DNA of 64,000 nt, from NCBI GenBank assembly GCA_025558095.1, contig JAIVFI010000025.1, positions 558,001 through 622,000 of the forward strand. The letters are read 5' to 3'. The notes below the pieces were generated by a model. That model was not told the origin of the DNA. It saw only the letters and a list, made by a program, of their open reading frames with translations, and did not search any database. The translations under genes and the position numbers were made by a program. Of the stretch, positions 26,402-51,240 are shown in pieces (position 1 is the first letter of the stretch; every line of letters starts with the position of its first letter). Origin of the DNA: Hyaloraphidium curvatum SAG 235-1. Lineage: Eukaryota; Fungi; Monoblepharomycota.

Positions 26402-28198
26402 TCATAGCTTCGCGTCCCTGCTCTTTGCCGGCCCCAGCCTGTCGTACACGCTCGCCGACATCCAGTCCTCCGGGATCGGGCCCACGTGCGTCTCGAGGCT
26501 CTTGGTGATCACCATCCGCTCGTTCAGTTGGGACAGCTTCGTGGCTCCGAGGAGCCGCATGGCCATCTCCATCTCGTCCTTGAGCAGCTGGATCGCGCGG
26601 ATCACCCCGTCGTCGCCGTAGGACGACATGGCGTACAGGAAGGGGCGGCCGATGCCGACGGCCGTCGCGCCGAGGCAGACGGCCTTGAGGATGTCGGTCC
26701 CGCGGCGCACGCCGCCGTCGACGAACAGCTCGAAGGGCTTGCGCGCCGAGTTGACGAACTTGGGGCCGCCCGCCGGGCCCGCGAAGCCGGCGGCGCGGAG
26801 GTCGCGCACGGCTTCGGGGAGGACCTCGATGCCGGAGCGGGCGAAATCGAGCTGGCGGCCGCCTGGCGTGGGGTGGGGGGTGAGCGGGGCAAGGGTTGGG
26901 AATAGGGAGGGCCCACCGTGGTTGGAGAGGACGACGCCGTCGAGGCCGTACTCGGCGGCCTGCACCGTGTCCTCGCCGCACTGCACGCCCTTGAGGCTGT
27001 TAACGGGATCAGCATCCCCAAAGCCATCCCGCCCCGCCGTCCACCCACATGAGCGGCAAGTTGGTGATGCTCCTGAACCACGCGATGTCGTCCCAGCACA
27101 GCCCCGGGTCTATGAAGCTCGATATCGCCCTCGCGGCGCCCTGGCTCCTGTCCACCCCGGCGTCCCCCTTCTGCACGTCCGCGTCGTCCTTGAACTTCAT
27201 CCGCATGTCCTTCTCCCTCCTCCCCAGCTGCGGCGCGTCCACGGTGATGAAGATGGCCTTGCACCCCCTCCGCCCGGCCTGCTCCACCAGCCGGCGGGTG
27301 ATGTCGCGGTCCTTGTTCACGTACAGCTGGAAGAACTGCGTCTGCCCCGGCGCCGCGGCCGCCGTGATCTCGTCGAGGGAGTAGCTGGCCAGGGTGGGGA
27401 CCATCTGGATGACGCCCTGCGCGTGGGCCGCGCGGGTGAGCACGATTTCGCCGTCGGGGTGGCCGAGCTTGCCCAGGGCCGTGGCGGTGATGTAGAAGGG
27501 GACGGAGGAGGGGTAGCCGAGGATTTTGGTGGAGAAGTCGACCTCGCGCACGTTGACGAGGATGCGGGGGCGGAAGAAGATGCGGTGGAAGGAGGAGTGG
27601 TTTTCCCTGAGCGGGGCGGGGGAACGCGGTCAACGGTCAGGAAAAGGACGAGGTTGGCAAGAGCCGGGGCCACCCACCTCAAAGTGATCTCGTCGTCCGC
27701 CCCGCTCGAGTAGTAAGCCCACGCCTCCCTCGTCATGACCCTCTTCGCCACGGCCTCAAAGTCGAGCAGGTTCAGCATCTCCCCCAGGGCCGGCTTGTTC
27801 TTCTCCGCCTCCCTCCTCGCGACCTCGTGCTCGTCCAGCGCCTCCTCCCCGCCCGCGCCGCCCGCCAGCGCCGGGTCCGCCAGCCCGACGAGCGCCTCGG
27901 GGGGCAGCAGCTTCTCCATGATGTCCCTCGGGTGGATGGGGTCGAACGCCTTGGTGCCGTCCTTGCCGGCGTACTTGAGGATGATGCTGGCGCCGCCGGG
28001 GTGGTCCGGCAGGAAGGCCGTCAGGTCGTACACCTTGCCGTGGAGCACGACCCAGAGGTCCTCCTTTGGGCGGGGCGGGGACCGCGGGTTGGGGGGGGCG
28101 CGCGCGGTCAGCCCCGTGCGGGCGGGAATCCCGGGCGCGCGCACCTTCGTGACGTGCTTCTCGAGCTCATCCTTCGCGATCGTGCGGAGCGGGGCCAT
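26402..28198 (-). CDS. CYB2: Flavocytochrome b2 / FMN-dependent alpha-hydroxy acid dehydrogenase with cytochrome b5 domain (multi-exon)
   Basis: VYDLTAFLPDHPGG, YYSSGADDE, PFYITATALGKLGHP, QLYVN, TVDAP, SNHGGRQLD, DGGVRRGTD; C-terminal AKL. Confidence 0.93.
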
Positions 28199-33047: not shown

Positions 33048-34713
33048 GGTGGTTGTTCCGCGGCCGCCGGACGCGTCCTCGGCCTCCCGCTGGTTGCAGA
33101 GGACACTGCTGCCGGATGTAGTGGTTGATTCGCGGCCGCCGGAGTCCGGGAAGTGTCAGCAGAAATAGTCGGCGGAGCGGGCGGACCCTGGCGCGGCGAA
33201 TTCAGCCGCGGGTCAACCACTTCCCCCGCCACCGCGCCAAGCAGGAAAAAACAACCGGGCCCGATTGCCGACAGAGTGCAGAGAGAAGCAACGATAGACT
33301 CGAGCTCGGCTCCTCTCGGTGCAGCCGCATTCGCGTTCCGCGTCGCTCGGGCAGCGCACCGCGGCTCACTGTCTCGAGGCGAGAACAATGATGGTGATGT
33401 ATGATACCGGGCAACTGGGAACATGATCTTGAAGATTCTGCGGGACCTGAGTTCGTTGGGATTGATTGGCGTCGGAGACCGGGATGGAGTGTACTGAGGC
33501 GGGTCCTGTGAGGGGCCGATGTCGCCCAGCTTGTCCACCGTGGACCGGCAGCTCCGCTTTCGCCTCCCTCTAGGGCACCGGGACCGGACGCTAAGCCGCA
33601 TGCAGACCCGAAGGCCTTCTGGGAAACGTCGGCGTCGGCGAGGATGCCGAGGGAGCGGGCAGACAGGTAGACAGGAACGGCCCGCGAGGTAGAGCGGCCG
33701 GAAAAAGAGCCAGACGTAATGATCGAGATGAAGATGAGGAATACCACGAGGCCAGATGGTCTGGAGTCGACCTGTCCGAGCTCGTTCTGTCCACGGAGCT
33801 CGGGAGTCCGCGCCGCACGCCAGCAACACCAGTCGTCGAGTCCGACTCCTCATGCCCGCCCGGCGCCCCGTTCGCGCCGCCGCCGTCTTCTCTCCCTTTC
33901 CCGCTCAACTCCACCCTTCTCGTCGCGCACAGCGCCGGAGCGCACGTCGGGGAAGCGGCCGGCGGAGCGCCACGTCATCCGAGCTTTGACTTCGATGCTG
34001 GTACCGGCGCCGCCCTCGGGAGGTGCTGGAGCCGGAACGGGGCCCAAGCAGGGGCCGTATCTCGGCGGAAACCGTCGTGGGAACGGGGGCGAGCTGGACG
34101 GACCGGGCGCAAGACAGGGACGGGCTTCCGGCGCGGGGCGCCGTTCTCCCGGACGACGCCTCCCGTACCGGAGCCGGCACTGGTGCCGACAATCCGATGG
34201 TCCCCGCGCCCCACGAGCAGCTGCAAGACGTGTGCGGCGGCGGGCTGCGACCCAAGGGCCGGGAAGTCGAGGGCCAGCGCCACGTCATCACCGCTTCTGC
34301 CCCGCGTTTGCTCCGGCGCCGCCTTGCGGGGGTGCCGGTTCGGGCGCGGGGTTGAAGCAGGGGCGTGGAATCGGCGGAGGGGAGAAACGGGGGAGCCGGA
34401 CGGGGGCGAACGGCGGATGGCGGACGGCGGACGGCGGTGGGCTTCCAGCCCGGGGCGGGCTGCACTGGCGGACGGCACTTTTGGCACTTTTCAAGTGCTG
34501 TCTACCCAACAGTGTCCTTTCTTCGGGCCGGTCGGGCCGTTGATCTATCCCTGGGGACTGCGCACATTGCGTAATCCGTGGGAACAGACGTAGGGTCTCG
34601 CCAGAAGCGGGCGGGGCGGCGGCCGGAGGGCGGCTGGGGATCGTGCTTGGAACCTTCTGTCGAGAACGTCGAAGATTCCCCGCCCGTCGGTCTCCACCGC
34701 GACGACCGCCGCC

Positions 34714-35764
34714 ATGTCCGCCAAGCTCCCCACTGCAACACCCGCCATGCCCGATGACACCCTCCCGCCGTGGGTCCGCGCCCTCCTCGCCCCCGCCCCC
34801 GGCGCCACGCTCCTCGACATCGACCTCTCCTCGGCGGCCGGCGCGGGCCGCTACACCGCCGCCTGCCGCGGCGCACCCCTCTTCTCGCGGCACATCTCAC
34901 GCGCCGTCAATGCGAACGTCGACGCCGCGGTGCTCTGCGGCGAAGAGACGTCGGGCGGCAAGGCCGCCGGGACGGGCGAGATGTCGCTGCAGGGCGCGGC
35001 GTCAATGGCCGTGCTGGCAGAGACCATGCGTGATTTGGTCGGCGGCAAACGTTTGGCAAGGATCGAGATTGCGTACAAGGCCGGCGTGCCGGTGCCGGCG
35101 TGGGTCAGGTGCACCGGGCGCGTCACCGCGCTGCGCGGAGCCGAGATCGACACCGAGGCCGCGATCGTCGACCCCGCCACCTGGACCCCGTTGGTTACGG
35201 CCAAAGCAACGTGGGACTCGCAGCGGACGCGTGGAATCAGGGAATCGGTTCCGGAACACATTGCAGCCGTCGTTTCTCGTGGCCACAAATCGCCAGCGCT
35301 GATCGAAGCGGTTGGCCGCCTGGTCGCGCAGCCCACCTTCGGCGGCAATGGCATGGATAACATGCGGCACTGGAAGCATACCGTGTTTGCCGGGCCTTGC
35401 GACGTGTACTGCGAGGTGGACCGGGAGACGCTGCCGATCGCGCTCTACTTGATGGCCGAGTGGGTTTCTTCCTGCAGCTACGACATGATTAACGAGTGTG
35501 ACCCGTTGCCCGCTTCCCGCCTCCAGCACCTCGGCGTGCTTCAACGGCTGGGCCGACGCACAGCACCACATGGTGTTCACCGGCACCCTCTCCTTCGAGT
35601 TCGAGCCCGTCGTCATCTCCTCGGGCTGGGTGCACTTCGTCTCCCGACGGATCAAGGACGAGTCGAGAAAGATGGCGGTTGAATTCGAGGCGGAGACGGG
35701 CTGCGGCGTGCGGCTCGGGCGCGGGCAGGGGGTGATGGTCAAGGTCGGCAGGCTGAAGCTCTGA
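34714..35764 (+). CDS. Probable double HotDog-fold thioesterase-like protein
   Basis: LQGAASMAVLAET..IEIAYKAGVP and, after an intron ~35460-35527, FTGTLSFEF...RKMAVEFE; fold call is pattern-based. Confidence 0.55.
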
Positions 35765-36567
35765 TGGATCTGGACTGTGATGGACAGGATCGCAAACAAG
35801 GATTAGATGATAGTGGGCGCAATGTGGTAGTTTCTTCCGCGGATTGCTGGATCTGTTGACTTCGTTTGAACTGGGGCGAAGTGATAACTCGTGCGAGCGC
35901 CTTTCCACACTGTCACCTTACCGCCGCCCAATTCGCGTCCTGTGAGCACTGCTGCGCTTCACCCTTCACAGCTCGTGTTCTCTCGTCACGCTAGTCTGCT
36001 CGGGCGCCCCGCGACGGGGAACTCGGCGCCCACGAGTTGGGGAGACTTCGAGCGCCACGTCACCACCCCGGCTGCGATCCTGGGCAGTTCCGGCGCCGCC
36101 TTTCTGGTAGTGCCGGCGCGAGCACAGGGTTGGAGCCGCAGCGGACGGAAGCAGGAGCGTGGCTGGAACGAGGGAGCCGGACGGGGCCCGGATGAGGACA
36201 GACGCGGGCTTGACTTCCGCCGCGGGGGCGCTACTCTGGGGGACAGCTCACTTTCATCCGCGAGCCGTCGTTGTCGAAATGGTCGTCCCCGCGGCGATGG
36301 CTTGAAGACGGAGCGGCATGCTAACCGGGCGGTTGCGAGACCGGCCGTGCCTCTGTTAGGAAGCTTGCCGCATCGGCCGTGACTCGGTGGCCGTTGGGCG
36401 TGGACCAGTGTCGCATCCAGCGAGACCCTGGGCGCCGCGGGACTGGCTGGTCGGCATCCATATAGGGGCATCCTCGTGCATGTCCCGGATTGGTTGATCG
36501 GTCGGGGACGCTTCACGCATCCAGTGGATTCTTCGGCGGAGGCGGACCTGGACGCTGATGACTCCTT

Positions 36568-38315
36568 GGCGGGGCCGGCGATCTCGCTTCGCGGATCGCG
36601 CGCCCGCCGCGCGATTCCAGAAGTCGGTATAGCCAGCTCCGCCCGACAGCCAGCACAATTTGGTTTGCGGATTGGTGAACGGCAGAGGGCGGGGAGCGCG
36701 GGCCGTGCCGGTGGACCGCGCCATGTGCGGTCCGCGTGAAGTGAAGCGATACTCCCCGCCCATGCAGCCTTCGCCGGGACTTCCATCGTCGACCGGAAAG
36801 CTCCCGATCCCCTCGACGGGGCCTTTCTGGATGGACTGTGGGCAGGGCGGATGACCGGGCAGATCGGACCGCGTTGCGAGCGCGATCCTTTTCCTCTCGG
36901 TAGGCCAGCCCTGCCTCGCCTTCATGCGCATGGGCAATTTCTCATTGGAACACCATTCGTCGACGCTCTCTTGCGGGACTGGTTCGGGACGGACGCGGAC
37001 GCGGAGGGCTGGGCGGGGCTGGCGATCGTGCTTGGGATCGCGCACCCCGTGATCCGAAAAAAGGAGCGCGTGCCGAGGTCCCGCCCTACTTGGCCGAGCA
37101 ACTCGGGTTACGGAGCTCTGCGCACCATGGACGGGAGTTGGCCGCCGGGCGGGGAGCGCTTTGGCGGCGACGAACCAAGCTGCGGCATGGTCCGCATTGT
37201 CCAGCTCCCTGCCCCGTGCTTGCTACGAGCCCGAGAGCGGTCGCACTTCTGCGATTTGAACCGTTTGTGCAGAGCGGACGGCTGGAACGGACGGTGGGCA
37301 GGGCGGGCGACTGGGCTGATCGGACCGCGCCGCGAGGGCGATCCTTTTCTCCAGCGGTGCCCTGCCCTCGCACGCACAAGCTATCCGATTCCACCCTCTG
37401 CTCGACAGCGCTCTCTTTGGGGACCTGTCCGGGACGGACACGCACGGCTGTGGAGGGCAGGGCGGGGCCGCGATCTGGCTCTGTGGACTGTGCACCGCGC
37501 GATCCGTATGTGTAGAACGTGGACCCGCCCAATTTGGCATAACGACTTGGTTCTGCGGACGGTGTGAACGAGGACTGGCGGTGGCCACCGGGCGGGGAGC
37601 GCGACCACCGCGATGGACCAATCTGTGGCGTGGTCCGTGATCAGATGCTAGGGTCTCCCCGCCCCTTGCTCACCACAAGCCCGAAGGGCCCCGATGGACT
37701 TTCGAACCATGGACGCACTGTGGCGCAAGTATGGCGCAATGCGACCGGAACGGACGATGGGCAGGGCCGGACGATCGTGGCTGCTTCTCGGATCGCGCCG
37801 CCGGTGCGATCGGAAGCTGGATGTCGAGACGGCCCTGCCTTCTCCTCGCAAGCACGAGCATCCCGACGCTACCTTTTACTCGGACACTCGGCTCCTTGGG
37901 GCTTTGGGAGGACGGACGCCAACGCGGATCAAGAGGGCGGGGGCGGCGATCGGGCTCCTTGCTCGGATCGCATCGCATGCGTTCCGTGCGGAGTATGACC
38001 GTCCCCGCCTCGCATGAGGCCACATCGGATTCGGCTTGGAATGGATCGGGCATCCGGACCCGACGGGAACGGGAGATCGGATTGGGCGGGGCCGCAAGCT
38101 GGCACCCGTGGACCGCGCGGGACGTGCGGTCAGCGGGCACCTGTATACGGCCTCGCCCTTCGCGCTGTTCATTCGTCGACAGTTGACTGTCGGGAAGAGG
38201 AAATCGGAGGTCTGCTTGAGGGACGGCGGTGACGGGACGTGGGAGCTTCTTCGAAAGGATCAGGTTTGCAGTCCAATGTAATCCGTTCGCGCCGGGTATA
38301 GTCCGCACCGCCGTC
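36568..38315 (+). ncRNA. Array of 11-12 hairpins (~70-80 nt each) at ~150-nt spacing; putative polycistronic structured-RNA locus
   Basis: Closing stems at 36568/36643, 36687/36761, 36841/36915, 37011/37086, 37147/37214, 37296/37367, 37460/37530, 37590/37664, 37760/37839, 37936/38009, 38084/38158 and a divergent 38222/38315; compensatory changes; G-U wobbles on the + strand. Confidence 0.65.
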
Positions 38316-38345
38316 TTCCCCTCCTACTTCTTTCCCCACTGTCCC

Positions 38346-39242
38346 TCACAGTTTCAGCTTTATCCGGGTAAAGTCCCGCTTCGCCTCGAGCACGACCGTC
38401 CGTCCAGCGGCAAACGGTTCCAGGAGGGCCGTCAGCACGGCCGTCGGCGCGCCCAGCGTCCGGGGATCCGTCTCGAGGGGGTCCGAGGGGGCAGATTCGG
38501 CGGCGCGGGCGAGGAGTTGCCGGAGTTCTCTGTTGTCGAGGATCAGCCCCAAGGATCACGGTCGTGCCGAGCCGTCAGCCCACCTGTGAGTCCATCCCCT
38601 CCCCGAAGGATAGTCCCTCCCCCCGCCCAGCTCCTCCCACCACACCGCCCACCTCCCCCCGTCCTCGTTCTCGTCCCAGTTGGGCAGCACGTCGTCGTTC
38701 AGCTCGCCCCCCCTGGCGACCATGTCCCCCACGCTCCGGGTCATCAGCGCGTCCCTGTGCACCGTCTCTGTCGGCACGGAGCCGTAGCATAGCACGGGGA
38801 AGGGTAGCTTCAGGTCGTTCGGGGTGACCAGCACTCGGGGGGGGGAAGGGGGTTCGCCGGGCTCTGCGGTGGTCCGCATCCCGCGCGTCACGGCGTCCCC
38901 GTGCAGCCCGGCCAGCTGGTTCCTCAGATCGGGGCGGTACGGCAGGATGCACGCGGTGCCGCCCGCCCGCAGCACGCCCATCAGCGCGACGGCCATCTCG
39001 GTCAGCCGCCACGCGTCGCCCGGGTTCCCTTCGAGGTGCGCCGACGGGACGACGATGCCGACGACGTCGCCCTTGCGGAACGGCCACCAGTTGGCGAGCA
39101 CGTCTCTCAGAGACCGCGCGAACCGCTGCGAGGCCACGCGGAGGCCGCGGTACGTGAGCTGCGCAGGGCCGGCGCGCAGGGCGATGCGGTCGTCGCGGTC
39201 CGGGTCGGGCGAGGGGGCAAACACGGCGCCGTACGCGGACAT
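38346..39242 (-). CDS. Truncated AMP-binding (ANL / 4-coumarate-CoA-ligase-like) N-terminal domain protein
   Basis: DRIAL..QLTYRGLR..RFARSL..FRKGDVVGI..ALMGVLRAGG; no SSGTTG adenylation core; probable intron near 38555-38610. Confidence 0.55.
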
Positions 39243-39412
39243 CGCGTTGAGCCGTCTTCAGGGGGGGTGAGCGTGGGGGAATGAGGACGGGTTGGAGGTG
39301 GTTTCGGATCGGCTAATCGCGCGGCAGGCCGCGACGAGGGGCCGCCTCATGCCCAGCAGATGTATATGTATAATGAGGAGCTAGCAATCCCACCGTACAC
39401 TTAGAAATCCCC

Positions 39413-40186
39413 CTACGCCCCAAGAATCAGCTCCTCATCTACATTCAAACCAAATGCGACCGGCGCAGGGGCCGGAGCGTTGACAGCGGCGGCTTCGGTG
39501 CACAGCTGAAGCCAGTGTTGGAGTTGGGCCGCGACGCCAAGAGCCCAGGCCACCGCGATCCGTTCGCGGAAGCGCCGCACAAAACGAGAGTAAAGGCCAT
39601 CGAGGTCCACGGGCTGCCCATCGCGGCCGACGATCCCGGGATACTGGATGCGCCCCATCTCCGAGGAGAAGCGCGAGAAAGTGGCAGAGACAGCGCTGTA
39701 CGAATCAAAAGCAAGCACGATCAGAGGGTAGAAGTTGGCGTTGAAGACGAAACGGGAGTAGTCCTTCCTGGCGGCCTCGACCCGCCGTTCGACTGCGTGG
39801 CCCGGGACCGAGAAGACCAGGCCCGTGTGCAAATGGGCCATAGAGGTGAGGGTCTTGATCTCGAGCAACCACCGTTTCCGGGTTTCGCGGTGCGTGATGA
39901 GAACGTCGCCAAGGCGGCCAGCATCCGCAGGCGTGGGCGGGGTGACAGTCTCGTAGCCATGCACAAGGAGGTTTGGCGGCATGGGGTGCACGCGGAGGAG
40001 CGGGATGGAGCGAAGCGCCGCGCGGATGGCCGCGCAAATGTCGTCGTGACCAGGACTGAAGAGATCCCGGCCATAGCAGCCCGAGAACGCGTGCTCCCCC
40101 GTCAGCGACATGGCCGATCGCTTGCAGCCCCGCCGGCAGGGAAGGAAAGACCAGGGTAGTCGGCCTCGTGCAGGAGCGGGAGGCAA
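39413..40186 (-). CDS. Retrotransposon C-terminal CCHC knuckle plus restriction-like endonuclease (out of frame with RT)
   Basis: CRRGC...GEHAFSGC, GHDDI, LGDVLI, LLEIK. Confidence 0.8.
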   Translation of the reverse strand: MPPAPARGRLPWSFLPCRRGCKRSAMSLTGEHAFSGCYGRDLFSPGHDDICAAIRAALRSIPLLRVHPMPPNLLVHGYETVTPPTPADAGRLGDVLITHRETRKRWLLEIKTLTSMAHLHTGLVFSVPGHAVERRVEAARKDYSRFVFNANFYPLIVLAFDSYSAVSATFSRFSSEMGRIQYPGIVGRDGQPVDLDGLYSRFVRRFRERIAVAWALGVAAQLQHWLQLCTEAAAVNAPAPAPVAFGLNVDEELILGA

Positions 40187-43089
40187 AGCCGGAAGCGTAC
40201 AAGTAAGCGGAAAAAGTTGTTGAGAATGTGGTTGGCAAGCAGCGCGGGAGAGGCAGTCAGGAAAGCCGACAGGCCGTCCTGCGCCTGGACGAGCCGCTTG
40301 CGGCGCTCCAGACCAGCGGAAGTGTCGGGTTGCAAGGCAATCAGAGCCGCGAGGCGGCGCTGGTCCTCGAGACGCGTAAGGTCGCTCTGCAGGCCGTGCC
40401 AGACCGGCTGAGCGAAGAAACTGGCGTCCGCAGGGAGCGTACGGCGGGCGGGCGCGGCGCCCACCGGTTGCCCAGCACGCGCAGCCTCGGCGTACGCTGC
40501 GGCCGTGTCATCCTCGACACGCTCAAAGGCGGGGCGGAGGGCCTCGATGACGGGAACCAGTTCCCGCACGTGCTCCACGCCCACACCCCGGGCCGAGGTT
40601 CGAAGACCAAGCATGGCGTCCAAAAAAAACGAGAAGAGCTGGGTCACACAGAGACGGAGGAGGGAGTACAGGCCCTGGAGGGAGGGGATGTCGGCCGGCA
40701 TGGCGTAGCCGAGCGCAGCGCGCTCGATTTCATCGAGAAGAGCGGCAATGGAGTCGATCTTGGCCGCGAGGAACGACTCCACATAGGCAGGGGTGCCGAC
40801 CGGGGCACCTACCACCTTGAGGCCGCACGAGCAAGCGAAGTCAGGCGAGCCCGGGGCCGACGCCGTGGCATGCACCTCGGGGTCGGCCTCGTGAGGCGGG
40901 AAGCCAGCGACGCGGATGTTGTGGGCCGCACCGGCCGCACGCACCCGCTCCAGCACGGCCGGGTTCGTCGAGAGCGAAAGCAGGTAGCTCTTGTCCGGGC
41001 GGTGGGTCATGCCGAGGGAAGCAAGGCCGTCACGCACCTCTCCCAGGACGGCCATGACCGAGTCCAGCGGCCCGACCACGGTGAGGTCGTCGAGGTACCC
41101 AAGGATGAGGCAGTCGGGGTGCCCAGAGCGGATGGGCCGCAGCATGCGGCTCATGGCGCAGGAGAAGATGGCAGACGACAGCGGGTCGCCCTGGATGTTG
41201 CCCTCGTACATGGTGATCCGGAAAAGGAGCTCCGCCGAGCGCCGGTCGCGGAAGTAGGCGTGGGAAGGGCGCGAGTAAACGAGGTTGTAGTACGGGATAA
41301 GCTGAGGCACCTGGCGGACCACCTCGCGCGCGAAGAGGCGGCGCAGCGTATTGAAGGCGTTCCTAGAGTCGACCTTCATGACGACGTGGTCGGGGAAGGC
41401 CGCCAGCCACGCGTTCACCGCGTGGGCGGTCGCCTCCGCGCCCCCGTCCACCCCGTGACCCAGGTCCTCCTGCTGTTGGAGCTTCCTCAGAAGAGCCTTG
41501 TGCCGCACGGCCAGGTACGAGCCCGCGAGCCGCGTGATGCCCTCCATAATGCCAATCGGCCGGAGCCCCCCCTCCGGCTTGAGCAGAGGGACGAGGATTT
41601 GATCCGTGAGGAGCGGCCGGAGCATGGGGGTGTCGAGTCGGCCAGTGCACACGCCGTGCACCATGGCCGCCAGCGGGCGGAGCTTCCGCCGCGTCGCGTC
41701 GTTCTCGCAGTTGTGCACGATGAAAAGTTTGGCCATGCTGAAACCCGACATGCCGGCCCCCACGCCGTCCTTCTTCCGGCGCAACCGGGCCCAGATGTCC
41801 TCCAGGAAAGCCGCGTCCGTGTAGGCAGGGCAGGGCACGGGCGCGTTGGGGGGCAGAGACAGCCGACACAGCGGCTCTCCCTCCCGCGGCCCCGGGTACA
41901 GCTCCTCCAGTTCCGCCTGCAGCGTGGGCGTGAAGCCAGCCGGAACGGCCTCCCCCGAGAGGGCCGCGGACGCAGCACCAGGAGCGCCCTTCAAGGCGGC
42001 AAGCACGATGGCCTTGAAGAGCTGGTAGTTGAGCGGCCGCAGCCCGTCCCGCCGCGCGCCCCGGTTGACCTGACGGGCGGCGAAGTAGTTCTGCTCGTAC
42101 ATGTAGTCCCCCGACATGACGTAGCCGCCAAACGCAAGGTAGGCGGTGAGAGTGCGGTGCAGGTCGGTTTCCGGTGCCGCCGGGTCCTCGTAGGCCCGTT
42201 GGAAAGACTCGCTGGCCCGGAAGGCGAGCGTGCTCCAGGTGGTGGTCCGGTAGCGGTGCTTCAGCGGCTCCGGCGGCGGCGCCCCCGCGCCCCCGCCCGG
42301 CGGCGGATCAGGCCCGGGACCCCCGGGTGGACCACCGTCGCCCGGGTCGCCCGGATCACCGCCGTGGCCGTGCCCGCCAGCCGCGGCGTTGCCGCCCGGC
42401 GCGCCGTCGCCGCCTGGGGGATCACCGCCGTCCTGGGCGGCACGCGCCGCTGCCGCCGCCGCCGCCAGCGCCGCCAGCGCCGCCCGTTGCGCCTGGCCGT
42501 CCTGCGGGGCGTCGGCCGCAACCCGGGCGGCCGCAAGGGCCGCCATCAGCGCGGGCGCGGGTGGCGAAGCACGGGGAGATGCCGACGATGCCGCCGGTGA
42601 CGCCGGTCCCTCCGCGCGTCCCGTGGCAGCCGCCCGCTCGGCACGCACGCGGTCGAGGAACTCGACGAGATCGGGTGGAAGCGAAGCTAAAGAGACGCCG
42701 AGTGGCGGGTTAGCTGCGTCCGGGTTGCACGAGGTGTGCTGTCCAGAAACACCGGCACCAGAGGCGTTTGCGGCGTAGGGACGCCGGCAACCCCCGCACC
42801 GCGCTAGCCCCATGGCACGCAACGCATCGGCAGACAGGCGCTGCATCGCCAACCAGTGCTCCGGGCTCCGTGTGACCCGAAGATGACCGTCCCGTTTGTT
42901 TTTGTTTGGAGTTGGCTGGAAGCGGCAACCATCAACCGGGCACGCATGGAGGCCGGGTTCAGCAGGCGCCTCCGCCATCGGCACATCGCCGTCGATGCAA
43001 GATTGGTGATGATGAGATAGAGCTCCGATGGTGGCAAAAGCTGCCGCGCAGCGGTGGCAGCTGTAAGGCAGGAGTGGCGTGCGGCTCAT
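40102..43089 (-). CDS. Retrotransposon ORF: three zinc-finger motifs plus reverse transcriptase
   Basis: CHRC..H..C; CPVDGC..H..H; CGGC..H..C; LKPEGGLRPIGIMEGITRL, GGAE, DSRNAFN, QGDPLS, YLDD, VVGAPVG. Confidence 0.92.
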   Translation of the reverse strand: MSRTPLLPYSCHRCAAAFATIGALSHHHQSCIDGDVPMAEAPAEPGLHACPVDGCRFQPTPNKNKRDGHLRVTRSPEHWLAMQRLSADALRAMGLARCGGCRRPYAANASGAGVSGQHTSCNPDAANPPLGVSLASLPPDLVEFLDRVRAERAAATGRAEGPASPAASSASPRASPPAPALMAALAAARVAADAPQDGQAQRAALAALAAAAAAARAAQDGGDPPGGDGAPGGNAAAGGHGHGGDPGDPGDGGPPGGPGPDPPPGGGAGAPPPEPLKHRYRTTTWSTLAFRASESFQRAYEDPAAPETDLHRTLTAYLAFGGYVMSGDYMYEQNYFAARQVNRGARRDGLRPLNYQLFKAIVLAALKGAPGAASAALSGEAVPAGFTPTLQAELEELYPGPREGEPLCRLSLPPNAPVPCPAYTDAAFLEDIWARLRRKKDGVGAGMSGFSMAKLFIVHNCENDATRRKLRPLAAMVHGVCTGRLDTPMLRPLLTDQILVPLLKPEGGLRPIGIMEGITRLAGSYLAVRHKALLRKLQQQEDLGHGVDGGAEATAHAVNAWLAAFPDHVVMKVDSRNAFNTLRRLFAREVVRQVPQLIPYYNLVYSRPSHAYFRDRRSAELLFRITMYEGNIQGDPLSSAIFSCAMSRMLRPIRSGHPDCLILGYLDDLTVVGPLDSVMAVLGEVRDGLASLGMTHRPDKSYLLSLSTNPAVLERVRAAGAAHNIRVAGFPPHEADPEVHATASAPGSPDFACSCGLKVVGAPVGTPAYVESFLAAKIDSIAALLDEIERAALGYAMPADIPSLQGLYSLLRLCVTQLFSFFLDAMLGLRTSARGVGVEHVRELVPVIEALRPAFERVEDDTAAAYAEAARAGQPVGAAPARRTLPADASFFAQPVWHGLQSDLTRLEDQRRLAALIALQPDTSAGLERRKRLVQAQDGLSAFLTASPALLANHILNNFFRLLVRFRLCLPLLHEADYPGLSFPAGGAASDRPCR

Positions 43090-43468
43090 GGCGAATACGG
43101 TGGCGGCGGCGATGCCGGTGTCCCGCCGCCAGGATCAGCTACCGCGGACGGTGCCTTGTCCGACGAGATCTCCCAATCGTCGAGCGCATGTGTCCGCATC
43201 CAAACCTCCTGTGACTCGGTCAGGTCGCCCCCCGCCCTGTGCCAGGCCGCAAGCGCCGACCACGCGTCACCGATAGCATCACGGCCGCCGTCATCGAGGA
43301 GCTCGGAAGATGGCCCGATCTAAGCAACAGAGGGGCCAGGCATCGCAATCAGGCAAACTGGAACCATTTTCATCTATCCGCTATGACGGGACGCCACGAA
43401 CCCAACAACTGTCCCGAGTCCGACCCCCACAATACACTGCCAAGGTCGTTCGCGCACCTGACCACATG

Positions 43469-49055: not shown

Positions 49056-49989
49056 CGCTGTCTCCTTAATGTGGTGAAGCGGGATGGCGGGCGGCGGCGG
49101 GCGCGGGCGTGGGCGCGGGGCCGGGGCGGGCGTGGCCGGCAAAGTGGGATTGCGGCGGGGCGCCCCCGGCCGGTGCCGAACAACCCAAACGCAAAGGCAG
49201 AAGGCCCGGCATCGATGCGCGCGCAGATCGCGGCATCCGATCCCGCAGACAGCCGCATCACATCGACGTAGATCACTTTGGATGTGCCGAGGCGGCGGGG
49301 TGGCTCCCGGGCACCTGGGCGTGCGTGGCCGGCCGACGCCGATACGCCGATCCCACGGGTCTTGGACCCGCGAACTCAATAGCGGGTCCACCGAATCCGC
49401 CGCGCCGCCGGGCCGCCGGCCAACCTCGTTCTCTCCTATTACTTCCGTGGACGAGAATAGTATCTCGGAGGGAATCGGACCCGTGCCAAGGGGTCACGCC
49501 CTTCGTGCCGATGCCGCGCAAGCGGCATCCCACCCGGCCACCTGATCGGCCGCGGTTCCTCGCCCTGCCGAGCACTTCCTGGACCTCTCGGAGGCATTTC
49601 TAGAACATCACTGCATCGGCTATTCACCGCGGACTCGGGACCTCGGCCGCAAGCCTCCGCGGTGTTGCGCCGCGCGGCCGCCCTGCGCACGGCCGGAGCG
49701 GAAGGCACTCCGCGAAGGCCTGAAATAGGCAGCACCGCGGCGCAACGGGCGCGATTTGATGGCATATAGAGTTCATTCGATTCGTTTTTTGTGTACTATG
49801 GGGCCCGGAGAGCCGGGCAAGCCCACCTTCTCGGCGAGCCAATGGCGTCCCAGGAGCGTCCGTCCTCTCCTCCGAAATCTCACGCAGCAGCATTCCGTAG
49901 ACCGACACTGGACGCCGGCACTGTCGGAAAGATCCGGAGGGTTCGAGTAGCGACCTTCTCCAAACCTGCCGCAGTCACCGGCGTCCCGC

Positions 49990-51240
49990 CCGCTTTCCGT
50001 CCGCATCTGTCCTCATCCACTGTCCCGTCCGAGATCTCGATGCTGGGCTAGACAGCGGAGGTTGGAATCTGCGAGGGAGCCATCCCGCGCCGGGCTCCGC
50101 CGAGCAGACCGGCATTCAACGCCGCGGAAGGGATCACCATTCAGCGGGATGCCGGCCGAGAAGAGTTCCCGGGCGGCGCGAGCAAAATCTTCCTGCGCCG
50201 CCATGCTCGCGAGGCCGGCATCCGCGTACGGTGGTCCGTCCGTTCGAACAAAAGCTCGGAAGCGGGACTTCACTGGGCTGTCAGCAGGTTGCCGCGGAAT
50301 CCGGCCTCGGCGGCAAGCCTGATACCCTCCGATCCCGCATCCGCGCGGTCCCGCGAACGACCCCGTGCAGAACAAGCACGTATGCCGGCACGTGCGGGTC
50401 TGCAATACGTCGCGCTTGCCAGCAGATTGCCGCTGGCGGGCACCGCAGGGCGCCCGCGCAGAAGTCCTGTGGAGTGGTGTCCCGTCCCATCGGCAGCCTC
50501 CTTGAGACCACGTTGTCCGTGTGCGCCGTCAAAGAAAAGGTGCAGGGCTCCTACCAGCTCCATTTGCGCCGACCACGAATATATCGGCGCCGCGAAACCC
50601 GAAGTCCAGCATCCGAAGGAGGCTTCTGCCTGTTTGCCACCAGGGTGCCCGGTCCGCCCTGATGCCGAACTTTCGCGTCGCAGAAGCGTCGGGCAGGATT
50701 CCGGCGCTGGGCGACGCAGACCAAGATCGGCATCCGGGTCCGTCCGAGTTGTGCGCTAGGGAATGGTGCGGATGCGCTACCGGAGAACTGTTCTGACGAA
50801 GGGCTCCCCACGCGTCAGAAGACACCCGTTGTTACCGCATCCGCGCGATCCAAAGAGTCCGATCCAGATTCTCGTGCGCGGGAAGTCCGCTTGGAGCCAC
50901 GCGACGCCGGTGCCAAAAGGGACGAGCCTGTGTGGGCACCGCACAGGCGCCCGCGCCTATCTCCATGCACCGGCGTCCCGTTCGATCGGCCGTGCCCTCG
51001 AGTACACAACCGGACCAATGTACAGTATCACCTCAGGTGCCAAACAGATTGGTGCACACCATTCAGATGAGTTTCGGAGAGCTGGAGAGAGATCGAGATC
51101 CGCCCTGATGCCGATCCTCCTGCGGATGAGCAGCGACTGGCACCATTCCCGGCGCCGGTCATCGCACCCCGAGATAGGCACCTGGTCAGTCCGAACTGCC
51201 GGCGCGTGCAGGAACTTCTGATGCGGATCTATGCGCGCCA
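49990..51240 (+). pseudogene. Diverged tandem duplication, probably a decayed leucine-rich-repeat gene
   Basis: 50652-50790 aligns with 51098-51240 (about 446-bp offset); scattered VPSEISML, PIGSL, PSELCA and SIGRAL fragments resemble IPxxIGxL LRR cores. Confidence 0.4.

Follow-up and report, generated by a model that had tools for sequence, protein, structure and literature searches.

A gene-free stretch of 1.6 kb in the nuclear genome of the aquatic fungus Hyaloraphidium curvatum (assembly of 31.9 Mb in 55 contigs) raises the question of why a G-rich sequence and, a short distance downstream, its complement recur along one strand: does the stretch specify a structured RNA, does it preserve a motif of the DNA itself, or are its inverted repeats maintained without function? 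The window analysed here is a 64-kb piece of contig C25 (JAIVFI010000025.1; C25:558001-622000) in a region with a GC content of about 66%, and the element in question is an array of eleven hairpins at 36567-38158 on its + strand (positions refer to the window unless a contig is named). A sequence-only reading had described it earlier as a cryptic hairpin array, either processed into multiple small RNAs or serving as a multivalent protein-binding scaffold. The hairpin units compared all come from this one genome, and the members of the family are paralogous units only. The array is best regarded as an undescribed, candidate lineage-specific structured RNA array, in which two short helices have been kept in a stretch that has otherwise drifted to or near saturation.

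Architecture, conservation and strand signature of the array

The eleven hairpins are 68-82 nucleotides (nt) long, and the distance from one unit start to the next is 120-176 nt. Their 5' arms, which share the motif GGC[AG]GGG, begin at 36568, 36688, 36841, 37012, 37148, 37297, 37461, 37591, 37760, 37936, and 38085, and the complement of each G-rich arm comes 58-72 nt downstream; all six arm pairs quoted in the sequence-only reading lie where it had placed them. For every unit (11 of 11) the fold is one hairpin, with energies from -38 to -55 kcal/mol and z-scores from -2.2 to -5.4 against 200 dinucleotide shuffles of that unit; 0-3 of the 200 shuffles reach the native energy. Direct-repeat analysis together with alignment resolves the units into three subtypes, A, B, and C, which cycle in the order A-B-C within a higher-order repeat of about 455 nt (super-period 443-494 nt, about 3.7 copies), with a pairwise identity among super-repeats of 0.49-0.64. 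Where 11-12 units had been counted before, eleven were found, and the putative twelfth, which aligns to the C slot of super-repeat 4, is a weaker hairpin with unrelated arms (z -1.7 on the + strand and -2.7 on the - strand). In a 90-nt sliding fold of the whole 64-kb window, strongly structured segments clustered at 34-35, 36-39, and 50-51 kb; elsewhere they occurred singly and scattered.

The stretch is both non-coding and old. Substitutions among the super-repeats show no preference for any of the three codon phases, and indels occur in all lengths rather than in multiples of three. The overlapping open reading frames (ORFs) have a flat GC content over codon positions one to three, with a third-position value (GC3) of 0.63-0.73, while GC3 in real genes of the region is 0.75-0.91; a Pfam search of nine overlapping ORFs at E<=1 returned no match. 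A decayed repeat-protein gene was rejected because of the lack of codon phase, the non-triplet indels, the flat GC3, and the absence of a Pfam match, in keeping with the earlier observation that no overlapping ORF shows a repeated peptide. The same features, taken with the low identity among super-repeats, underlie the view of an old, non-coding repeat.

Conservation within this stretch is confined to two helices. The basal helix P1 has 10 bp (GGGCRGGGnn/nnCCCYGCCC) and the apical helix P2 has 7-9 bp (GGAYCGCG/CGCGRTCC), with within-type identities of 0.83 and 0.71, respectively. Outside them, within-type identity falls to 0.43 for the middle segments and apical loop and to 0.52 for the spacers, close to the baseline of 0.42 obtained from shuffled spacers aligned in the same way, so that all but P1 and P2 is at or near saturation. 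The earlier statement that loops and spacers have diverged while structure is kept is thus confirmed in numbers. The conserved lengths are 8-10 nt for P1 and 8-9 nt for P2, and the segments between the two helices measure 14-21 nt on the 5' side and 11-21 nt on the 3' side. When the middle segments were shuffled alone, the mean z-score was only -0.8, with p<0.03 only for A1, A4, and B4; five units (A1, A2, A4, B4, and C3) are nearly fully paired, and the other six contain a large asymmetric internal loop. Paired middle segments were therefore dropped from the model, since their pairing is no better than that of shuffles in most units. The hairpin anatomy proposed by the sequence-only reading accordingly stands for the closing and apical stems and fails for a reliably paired stretch between them. 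As the middle is neither conserved nor reliably paired, the module is best read as a pair of short helices enclosing a variable internal loop, rather than as a long continuous stem.

Evidence that pairing itself has been maintained comes from an alignment of 12 sequences (the eleven array units and one unit from a second locus described below) with 17 consensus pairs. Standard pairs occupy 93% of the consensus stem cells, compared with 35-51% when the 3' partner is slid by 1-3 columns, and both sides have changed in 6 of the 17 pairs (17 cells), the observed covariation score being reached by none of 500 shuffles. Pair 5/81 has gone from G-C to A-U in every C unit, pairs 9-10/76-77 alternate between CC/GG and AG/CU in types A and B, and pair 37/49 alternates between G-C and A-U within type B. 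The arms thus covary, as had been claimed, and the covariation is real but modest; it is suggestive rather than decisive because the events are few and are drawn from paralogs of one array.

A stronger argument at the sequence level comes from how the two strands differ. G·U/U·G cells number 18 and A·C/C·A cells 2 in the consensus stems, over at least 14 unit/column combinations (binomial p 9e-4 against the C/T:A/G difference ratio of 267:218 in the spacers of the same alignment). Uncompensated changes in P1 number one in the 5' arms and eight in the 3' arms, seven of the latter being C-to-T. The summed minimum free energy (MFE) of the units is -497 kcal/mol on the + strand and -447 kcal/mol on the - strand, and that of 36450-38350 is -945 and -865 kcal/mol, respectively. 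This asymmetry favours an RNA read from the + strand, which tolerates G·U, whereas a duplex binding site or a cruciform would constrain both arms equally; from it we infer that the selected molecule is an RNA from the + strand. In the global fold of 36450-38350, 7 of the 11 local hairpins persist. RNAalifold applied to the four super-repeats paired arms of different units together and was uninformative.

Distribution, paralogous locus and neighbouring features

The 12-sequence alignment was used to build a covariance model, R1, for searching the genome, with 150 of about 43,000 first-look candidates scored. Among these, R1 recovered the eleven array units at 51-66 bits and one further match at C25:653627-653705 (-), so that the family, among the candidates scored, is confined to contig C25 and is not a dispersed transposon; for the same reason, a miniature inverted-repeat transposable element (MITE) or foldback element was rejected. 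The family as delineated here consists of the array, an outlier unit, U0, upstream of an orphan gene, and a copy at the end of the contig that has partly decayed. At this second locus there are an intact B unit, Bx (z -4.1), a decayed C unit, Cx, and what is left of an A unit after a deletion of about 44 nt, and after these comes a paralog of the orphan gene (72% identical). The Bx-Cx pair shares 70% identity with B2-C2, which is no less than the super-repeats share among themselves. The hairpin has nevertheless been kept at 11 of 12 positions inside the array and in only 2 of 5 related units outside it (Fisher one-sided p 0.05); because the outside units decay even though Bx-Cx is no more divergent than the super-repeats, this contrast is suggestive of constraint on the array itself. 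Contig C25 ends inside this second hairpin-repeat copy (C25:653458-653716), and the assembly may have broken there in a longer array.

Pattern searches gave a similar picture. The strict arm pattern has 30 matches in the genome and 9 in a control, those outside C25 being chance matches or belonging to an unrelated repeat, and P2-like mini-hairpins (GGAYCRYG..CRYGRTCC) number 43 in the genome and 6 in the control, scattered singly. One metagenome scan with a P1-P2-P1' pattern yielded only isolated chance matches, which R1 scored at no more than 30 bits. A young dispersed repeat of about 465-535 bp, with copies 95-99% identical on at least five contigs (Table 1), holds a 77-nt inverted repeat with 13-bp arms (GGGCGGGGyGGGC/GCCCACCCCGCCC); this GGGCGGGG-armed repeat was considered as a family member and rejected as unrelated, scoring below 23 bits with R1.

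The array could not be assigned to a described RNA family, as the sequence-only reading had anticipated. Rfam 15 at gathering thresholds gave no match over the whole window, and at E<=10 over 34400-38500 it gave only 14-21 bits where model thresholds are 38-90; ARAGORN found no tRNA or tmRNA in the window. A scan for bacterial promoters and terminators was empty, which is irrelevant to this eukaryotic locus. Clusters of box H/ACA and box C/D small nucleolar RNAs (snoRNAs) are similar to the array in consisting of tandem small structured units, and the H/ACA fold, in which an internal-loop pocket separates a lower from an upper stem, resembles its module. Unlike H/ACA RNAs, however, the eleven stems are not followed at a fixed place by a shared ANA triplet, there is no H/ACA box at 14-16 nt from the pocket, and the distance from the pocket to the end of the hairpin (3' loop segment plus P1) is 21-31 nt, not 14-16. 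Box C/D snoRNAs in the spacers were likewise rejected: a lone TGATGA lies at about 36556, with none in the other spacers, C (RUGAUGA)/D (CUGA) box pairs are absent from the spacers, and no Rfam snoRNA model matches.

Table 1. Hairpin units of the array and other features of the window and genome. z-scores are from folding against dinucleotide shuffles; R1 is the score with the covariance model of the units.
Feature	Position	Strand	Energy (kcal/mol)	z	R1 (bits)	Remarks
Hairpin A1 (type A)	36567-36644	+	-47.6	-3.75	52.7	
Hairpin B1 (type B)	36687-36761	+	-48.7	-4.75	65.4	P1 GGGCGGGGAG/CTCCCCGCCC
Hairpin C1 (type C)	36840-36916	+	-43.0	-3.48	65.8	P1 GGGCAGGGC/GCCCTGCCT
Hairpin A2	37011-37086	+	-44.7	-4.07	57.8	
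Hairpin B2	37147-37214	+	-38.3	-3.21	51.1	
Hairpin C2	37296-37367	+	-41.1	-2.17	62.8	
Hairpin A3	37460-37530	+	-37.9	-3.72	59.0	
Hairpin B3	37590-37664	+	-40.2	-2.96	66.1	
Hairpin C3	37759-37840	+	-52.1	-4.39	58.8	
Hairpin A4	37935-38010	+	-49.9	-4.78	60.6	
Hairpin B4	38084-38158	+	-55.0	-5.42	51.2	A-like closing stem GGGCGGGGCCG/CGGCCTCGCCC
Decayed C4 position	38222-38315	undecided				Weak hairpin with unrelated arms GACGGCGGTG/CACCGCCGTC; array end
Extra 79-nt hairpin	36218-36296	+		-2.9		Other arms CCGCGGGGGCG/CGTCCCCGCGG; 270 nt upstream of A1
U0, outlier A-type unit	34609-34685	+		-1.9	17.9	Strict P1 pattern match; 60 nt upstream of ATG 34747
Decayed unit beside U0	34530-34602	+		-1.0	22.2	P2-like GGACTGCGCA..TGCGTAATCC left
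Orphan gene	34747-35765	+				Two exons; NCBI hypothetical protein DFJ74DRAFT_682047
Second-cluster hairpins	49664-49746, 49910-49986, 50144-50226, 50208-50311, 50656-50739, 50763-50849, 50899-50981					
Dispersed repeat copies	C7:210.3k, C15:232.9k, C23:654.7k, C43:252.0k, C44:138.5k					

The array lies between the orphan gene (+ strand, stop at 35765) and a minus-strand ORF (ATG 39242, end near 38346) with a weak AMP-binding N-terminal match. The protein encoded by the orphan gene is 99% identical to a hypothetical protein of H. curvatum at NCBI, and the ORF read here starts 78 codons further upstream than annotated. The gene's paralog, located at the contig end (L003:2290-3313, minus; 72% DNA identity), is also preceded by hairpin units, and the pair has no Pfam match and no homologue among 5.8 billion proteins. 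An ESM-Atlas feature match of 0.90 to a 4HBT thioesterase cluster, which is to be read as a lead only, points weakly to a possibly thioesterase- or hotdog-like protein; a role of the orphan protein as a nucleic-acid-binding partner was rejected on the ground that the Atlas features point in this other direction. In U0, P1 is intact and P2 has been rewritten as GGAAcCTTC/GAAGaTTCC, and U0 and A2 have GATCGTGCTTGG in common. The extra hairpin upstream of A1 has a 3' arm that is unconserved at the paralogous locus.

Both loci also carry a conserved non-coding block of about 180 nt, found at 33930-34130, 34240-34440, and 36020-36220 and at the paralogous locus (L003:1850-2060, minus), with invariant cores GCCACGTCA and CCGGCGCCGCC and a mean column identity of 70% in a four-way alignment. 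No further copy was found in the genome, and all four lie on C25. At the paralogous locus the block and a carbon-nitrogen hydrolase gene (Pfam E 4e-58) have the same orientation, the block being located 460-670 nt upstream; in the window, two blocks precede the orphan gene and the third (36020-36220, +) precedes the array. Judged by this position, the block is a candidate shared promoter or enhancer, including for the + strand of the array. On the far side of the array, a CRE-like retrotransposon occupies 39360-43320 (-), with a 995-aa ORF at 40102-43089 containing RVT_1 (E 5e-10), and its 3' end lies about 120 nt upstream of ATG 39242 of the AMP-binding-like ORF. A link between the array and this element was rejected, as no hairpin unit occurs in the element's flanks.

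A second cluster, at 49655-50984, contains seven hairpins of about 83-100 nt with closing stems of 11-17 bp and z-scores of -2.2 to -5.2. Its arms (GGATGCCGG / GACGCCGG motifs) have no relation to the GGGCRGGG family; it shows weak direct repeats at 446-512-nt spacing, is unique in the genome, and folds without strand preference (-340 vs -344 kcal/mol). Hairpin arrays may therefore recur in this genome. A lone hairpin of about 100 nt was also observed at 27609-27707, with a 13-bp closing stem (GAGCGGGGCGGGG/CCGCCCCGCTC), a z-score of -3.5, and a weak R1 match of 25 bits.

Candidate explanations for the array

The explanation tentatively favoured here, although our confidence in it falls somewhat short of even, regards the array as a structured, lineage-specific locus for a non-coding RNA on the + strand, with modules that serve as multivalent protein docking sites. 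The comparisons show that purifying selection has held P1 and P2 whereas loops and spacers have diverged to saturation, that compensatory and G·U changes have preserved the pairing, and that the family, among the candidates scored, is confined to this locus and one paralogous locus. About 3.7 old repeats of approximately 455 nt each carry three modules, A, B, and C, and in each module two unconserved segments, which form the variable internal loop, hold P1 and P2 apart. A + strand RNA, possibly made from the conserved block at 36020-36220, would then present eleven modules, which, in the mechanism judged most likely, could dock a protein able to recognise a pair of short helices of defined sequence and spacing; such an RNA might act as a multivalent scaffold or sponge, rather than as a precursor of small RNAs of about 21 nt. 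Short fixed helices at a roughly fixed distance, free loops and spacers, and about ten copies fit protein docking better than dicing.

Several observations weigh against this explanation. All of the covariation was observed among paralogous units of one array in one genome, with roughly 6-8 independent events, and some of it could reflect exchange between unit types, as in B4 with its A-like closing stem. P1 and P2 are kept in sequence as well as in pairing, and a DNA-level motif would give the same result. Four of the local hairpins are replaced in the global fold by pairing between interchangeable arms of neighbouring units, and the promoter role of the 36020-36220 block is argued from position alone.

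The main rival at the RNA level is a polycistronic small-RNA precursor, that is, a + transcript cut by Dicer-like or RNase III enzymes into microRNA-like RNAs (milRNAs) or hairpin small interfering RNAs with a shared, seed-like GGGCRGGG 5' end and otherwise differing sequences. Spacing and hairpin size similar to those of animal microRNA (miRNA) clusters, the near-complete pairing of five units (A1, A2, A4, B4, and C3), and a genome that encodes Argonaute/Piwi proteins at at least three places and RNase III proteins, one of them with two tandem RNase III domains, all speak for such a precursor, as does the fact that the sole sub-threshold Rfam matches are miRNA precursor models; these, however, reach only 20-21 bits against gathering scores of 78-90. 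No arm of mature length (about 21 nt) is conserved among the paralogous hairpins, only the 8-10 nt at the base and the 8-9 nt at the tip being kept, and the middle is a large asymmetric loop in six units and pairs no better than shuffles. We consider this explanation rather unlikely. Hence, of the interpretations offered by the sequence-only reading, a structured non-coding array is still plausible, the pre-miRNA-like version fits poorly, having no conserved duplex of about 21 nt and, in six of the eleven units, no continuous stem of Dicer length, and the protein-binding scaffold, as a candidate only, suits the anatomy better. More weight, though still on the unlikely side, is given to an element that operates at the DNA level and to which RNA is irrelevant, either a relic higher-order satellite of about 150-bp monomers whose dyad symmetries would persist because they form cruciforms or a set of GGGCGGGG/GGAYCGCG protein-binding sites. 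The array does consist of head-to-tail monomers in a higher-order unit (A-B-C, 443-494 nt, 3.7 copies), both helices are conserved in sequence and not in pairing alone, the locus lies 35-95 kb from the contig end among local duplications and the CRE-like retrotransposon, and the cluster at 49655-50984, having no strand preference, indicates that intergenic DNA in this region may readily give rise to inverted repeats. Such an element nevertheless predicts equal constraint on the two arms and equal numbers of G·T and A·C, at odds with the 18 and 2 observed and with 5' arms that are nearly invariant opposite 3' arms that tolerate C-to-T changes. Furthermore, copies that are 0.49-0.64 identical lack the high identity among higher-order copies and the concerted evolution of live satellites, and separate binding motifs would need no compensatory changes in P1 and P2.

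The neighbouring genes suggest a cis-acting role, in which the array would be a long structured 3' extension of the orphan gene, or a buffer or terminator between convergent genes, offering RNase III entry sites or roadblocks instead of forming an RNA gene of its own. It shares the orientation of the upstream gene and sits before the minus-strand ORF ending near 38346, and related units occur just upstream of both paralogous genes (U0; Bx/Cx). Against this, the array begins 800 nt past the stop codon with the conserved promoter-like block between, eleven conserved copies exceed the need of a terminator, and the gene-adjacent units are precisely those that decay, which makes such a role very unlikely. 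Neutral maintenance is the least probable explanation of all: template switching, which creates and maintains perfect stems (PMC8794818, PMC5453318), or quasi-palindrome correction would, during replication, copy arm from arm and mimic compensation without function, and other inverted repeats do occur nearby. It leaves unexplained the excess of G·U over A·C, the presence of the same two arm sequences in all eleven units with saturated segments between them, and the decay of related units outside the array. A wider proposal, which appears quite unlikely yet easier to accept than either of these two, is that the locus belongs to an undescribed class of polycistronic non-coding RNA loci composed of tandem two-helix hairpins of about 75-85 nt with variable, guide-like internal-loop segments, a class that would include the cluster at 49655-50984. 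The array at 36567-38158 would then be its best-preserved example, processed into hairpin RNAs or acting as a programmable scaffold.

Relation to described systems and significance

Comparison with described systems places the array between several of them. In layout it resembles miRNA clusters (e.g., mir-17~92) and fungal milRNA loci, with several hairpins of about 70-80 nt placed 120-180 nt apart on one strand, short sequences shared among paralogous hairpins, and RNA interference genes in the H. curvatum genome. Unlike these clusters, it conserves the base and the tip of the hairpin, leaves the middle unconserved and often unpaired, and has no match to an Rfam miRNA model at threshold. Long non-coding RNAs (lncRNAs) built of tandem modules that recruit proteins multivalently include the Xist A-repeat, the NORAD repeat units, the roX stem-loops, and meiRNA of Schizosaccharomyces pombe, all of which are transcribed and have known protein partners. 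They share with the array, which is known from sequence alone, short structured modules, poorly conserved spacers, and about ten copies suited to multivalent binding, whereas the module of the array (two GC-rich helices around a variable internal loop, about 75 nt) is unrelated to theirs both in sequence and in Rfam. Higher-order satellite DNA has similar monomers of about 150 bp, a three-monomer unit, and an inverted repeat in each monomer, in contrast to which the array has few and divergent copies, strand-asymmetric arms, and a single locus plus a paralog. MITEs and foldback elements likewise are short units with GC-rich inverted repeats that fold into hairpins, whereas the array units stand in tandem at regular spacing without independent insertion sites. 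The nearest analogies are miRNA clusters in terms of layout and, in terms of conservation pattern, tandem-module lncRNAs.

To our knowledge, the non-coding RNAs of early-diverging fungi are almost unexplored. Fungal annotations of hairpin small RNAs are contested, according to a passage in a review (PMC11413187) that cites a re-analysis published in eLife in 2022 (Johnson et al.). The present locus offers a clean and testable candidate, with eleven paralogous modules, stems that have outlasted their saturated surroundings, and a strand signature of the kind left by selection on RNA. Without transcription, the locus would represent an unusual case in which inverted repeats of DNA are constrained asymmetrically between the strands. 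With transcription, it would constitute a new family of structured RNA that brings its own paralog alignment for structural work, and the array could also be a natural multivalent hairpin scaffold.

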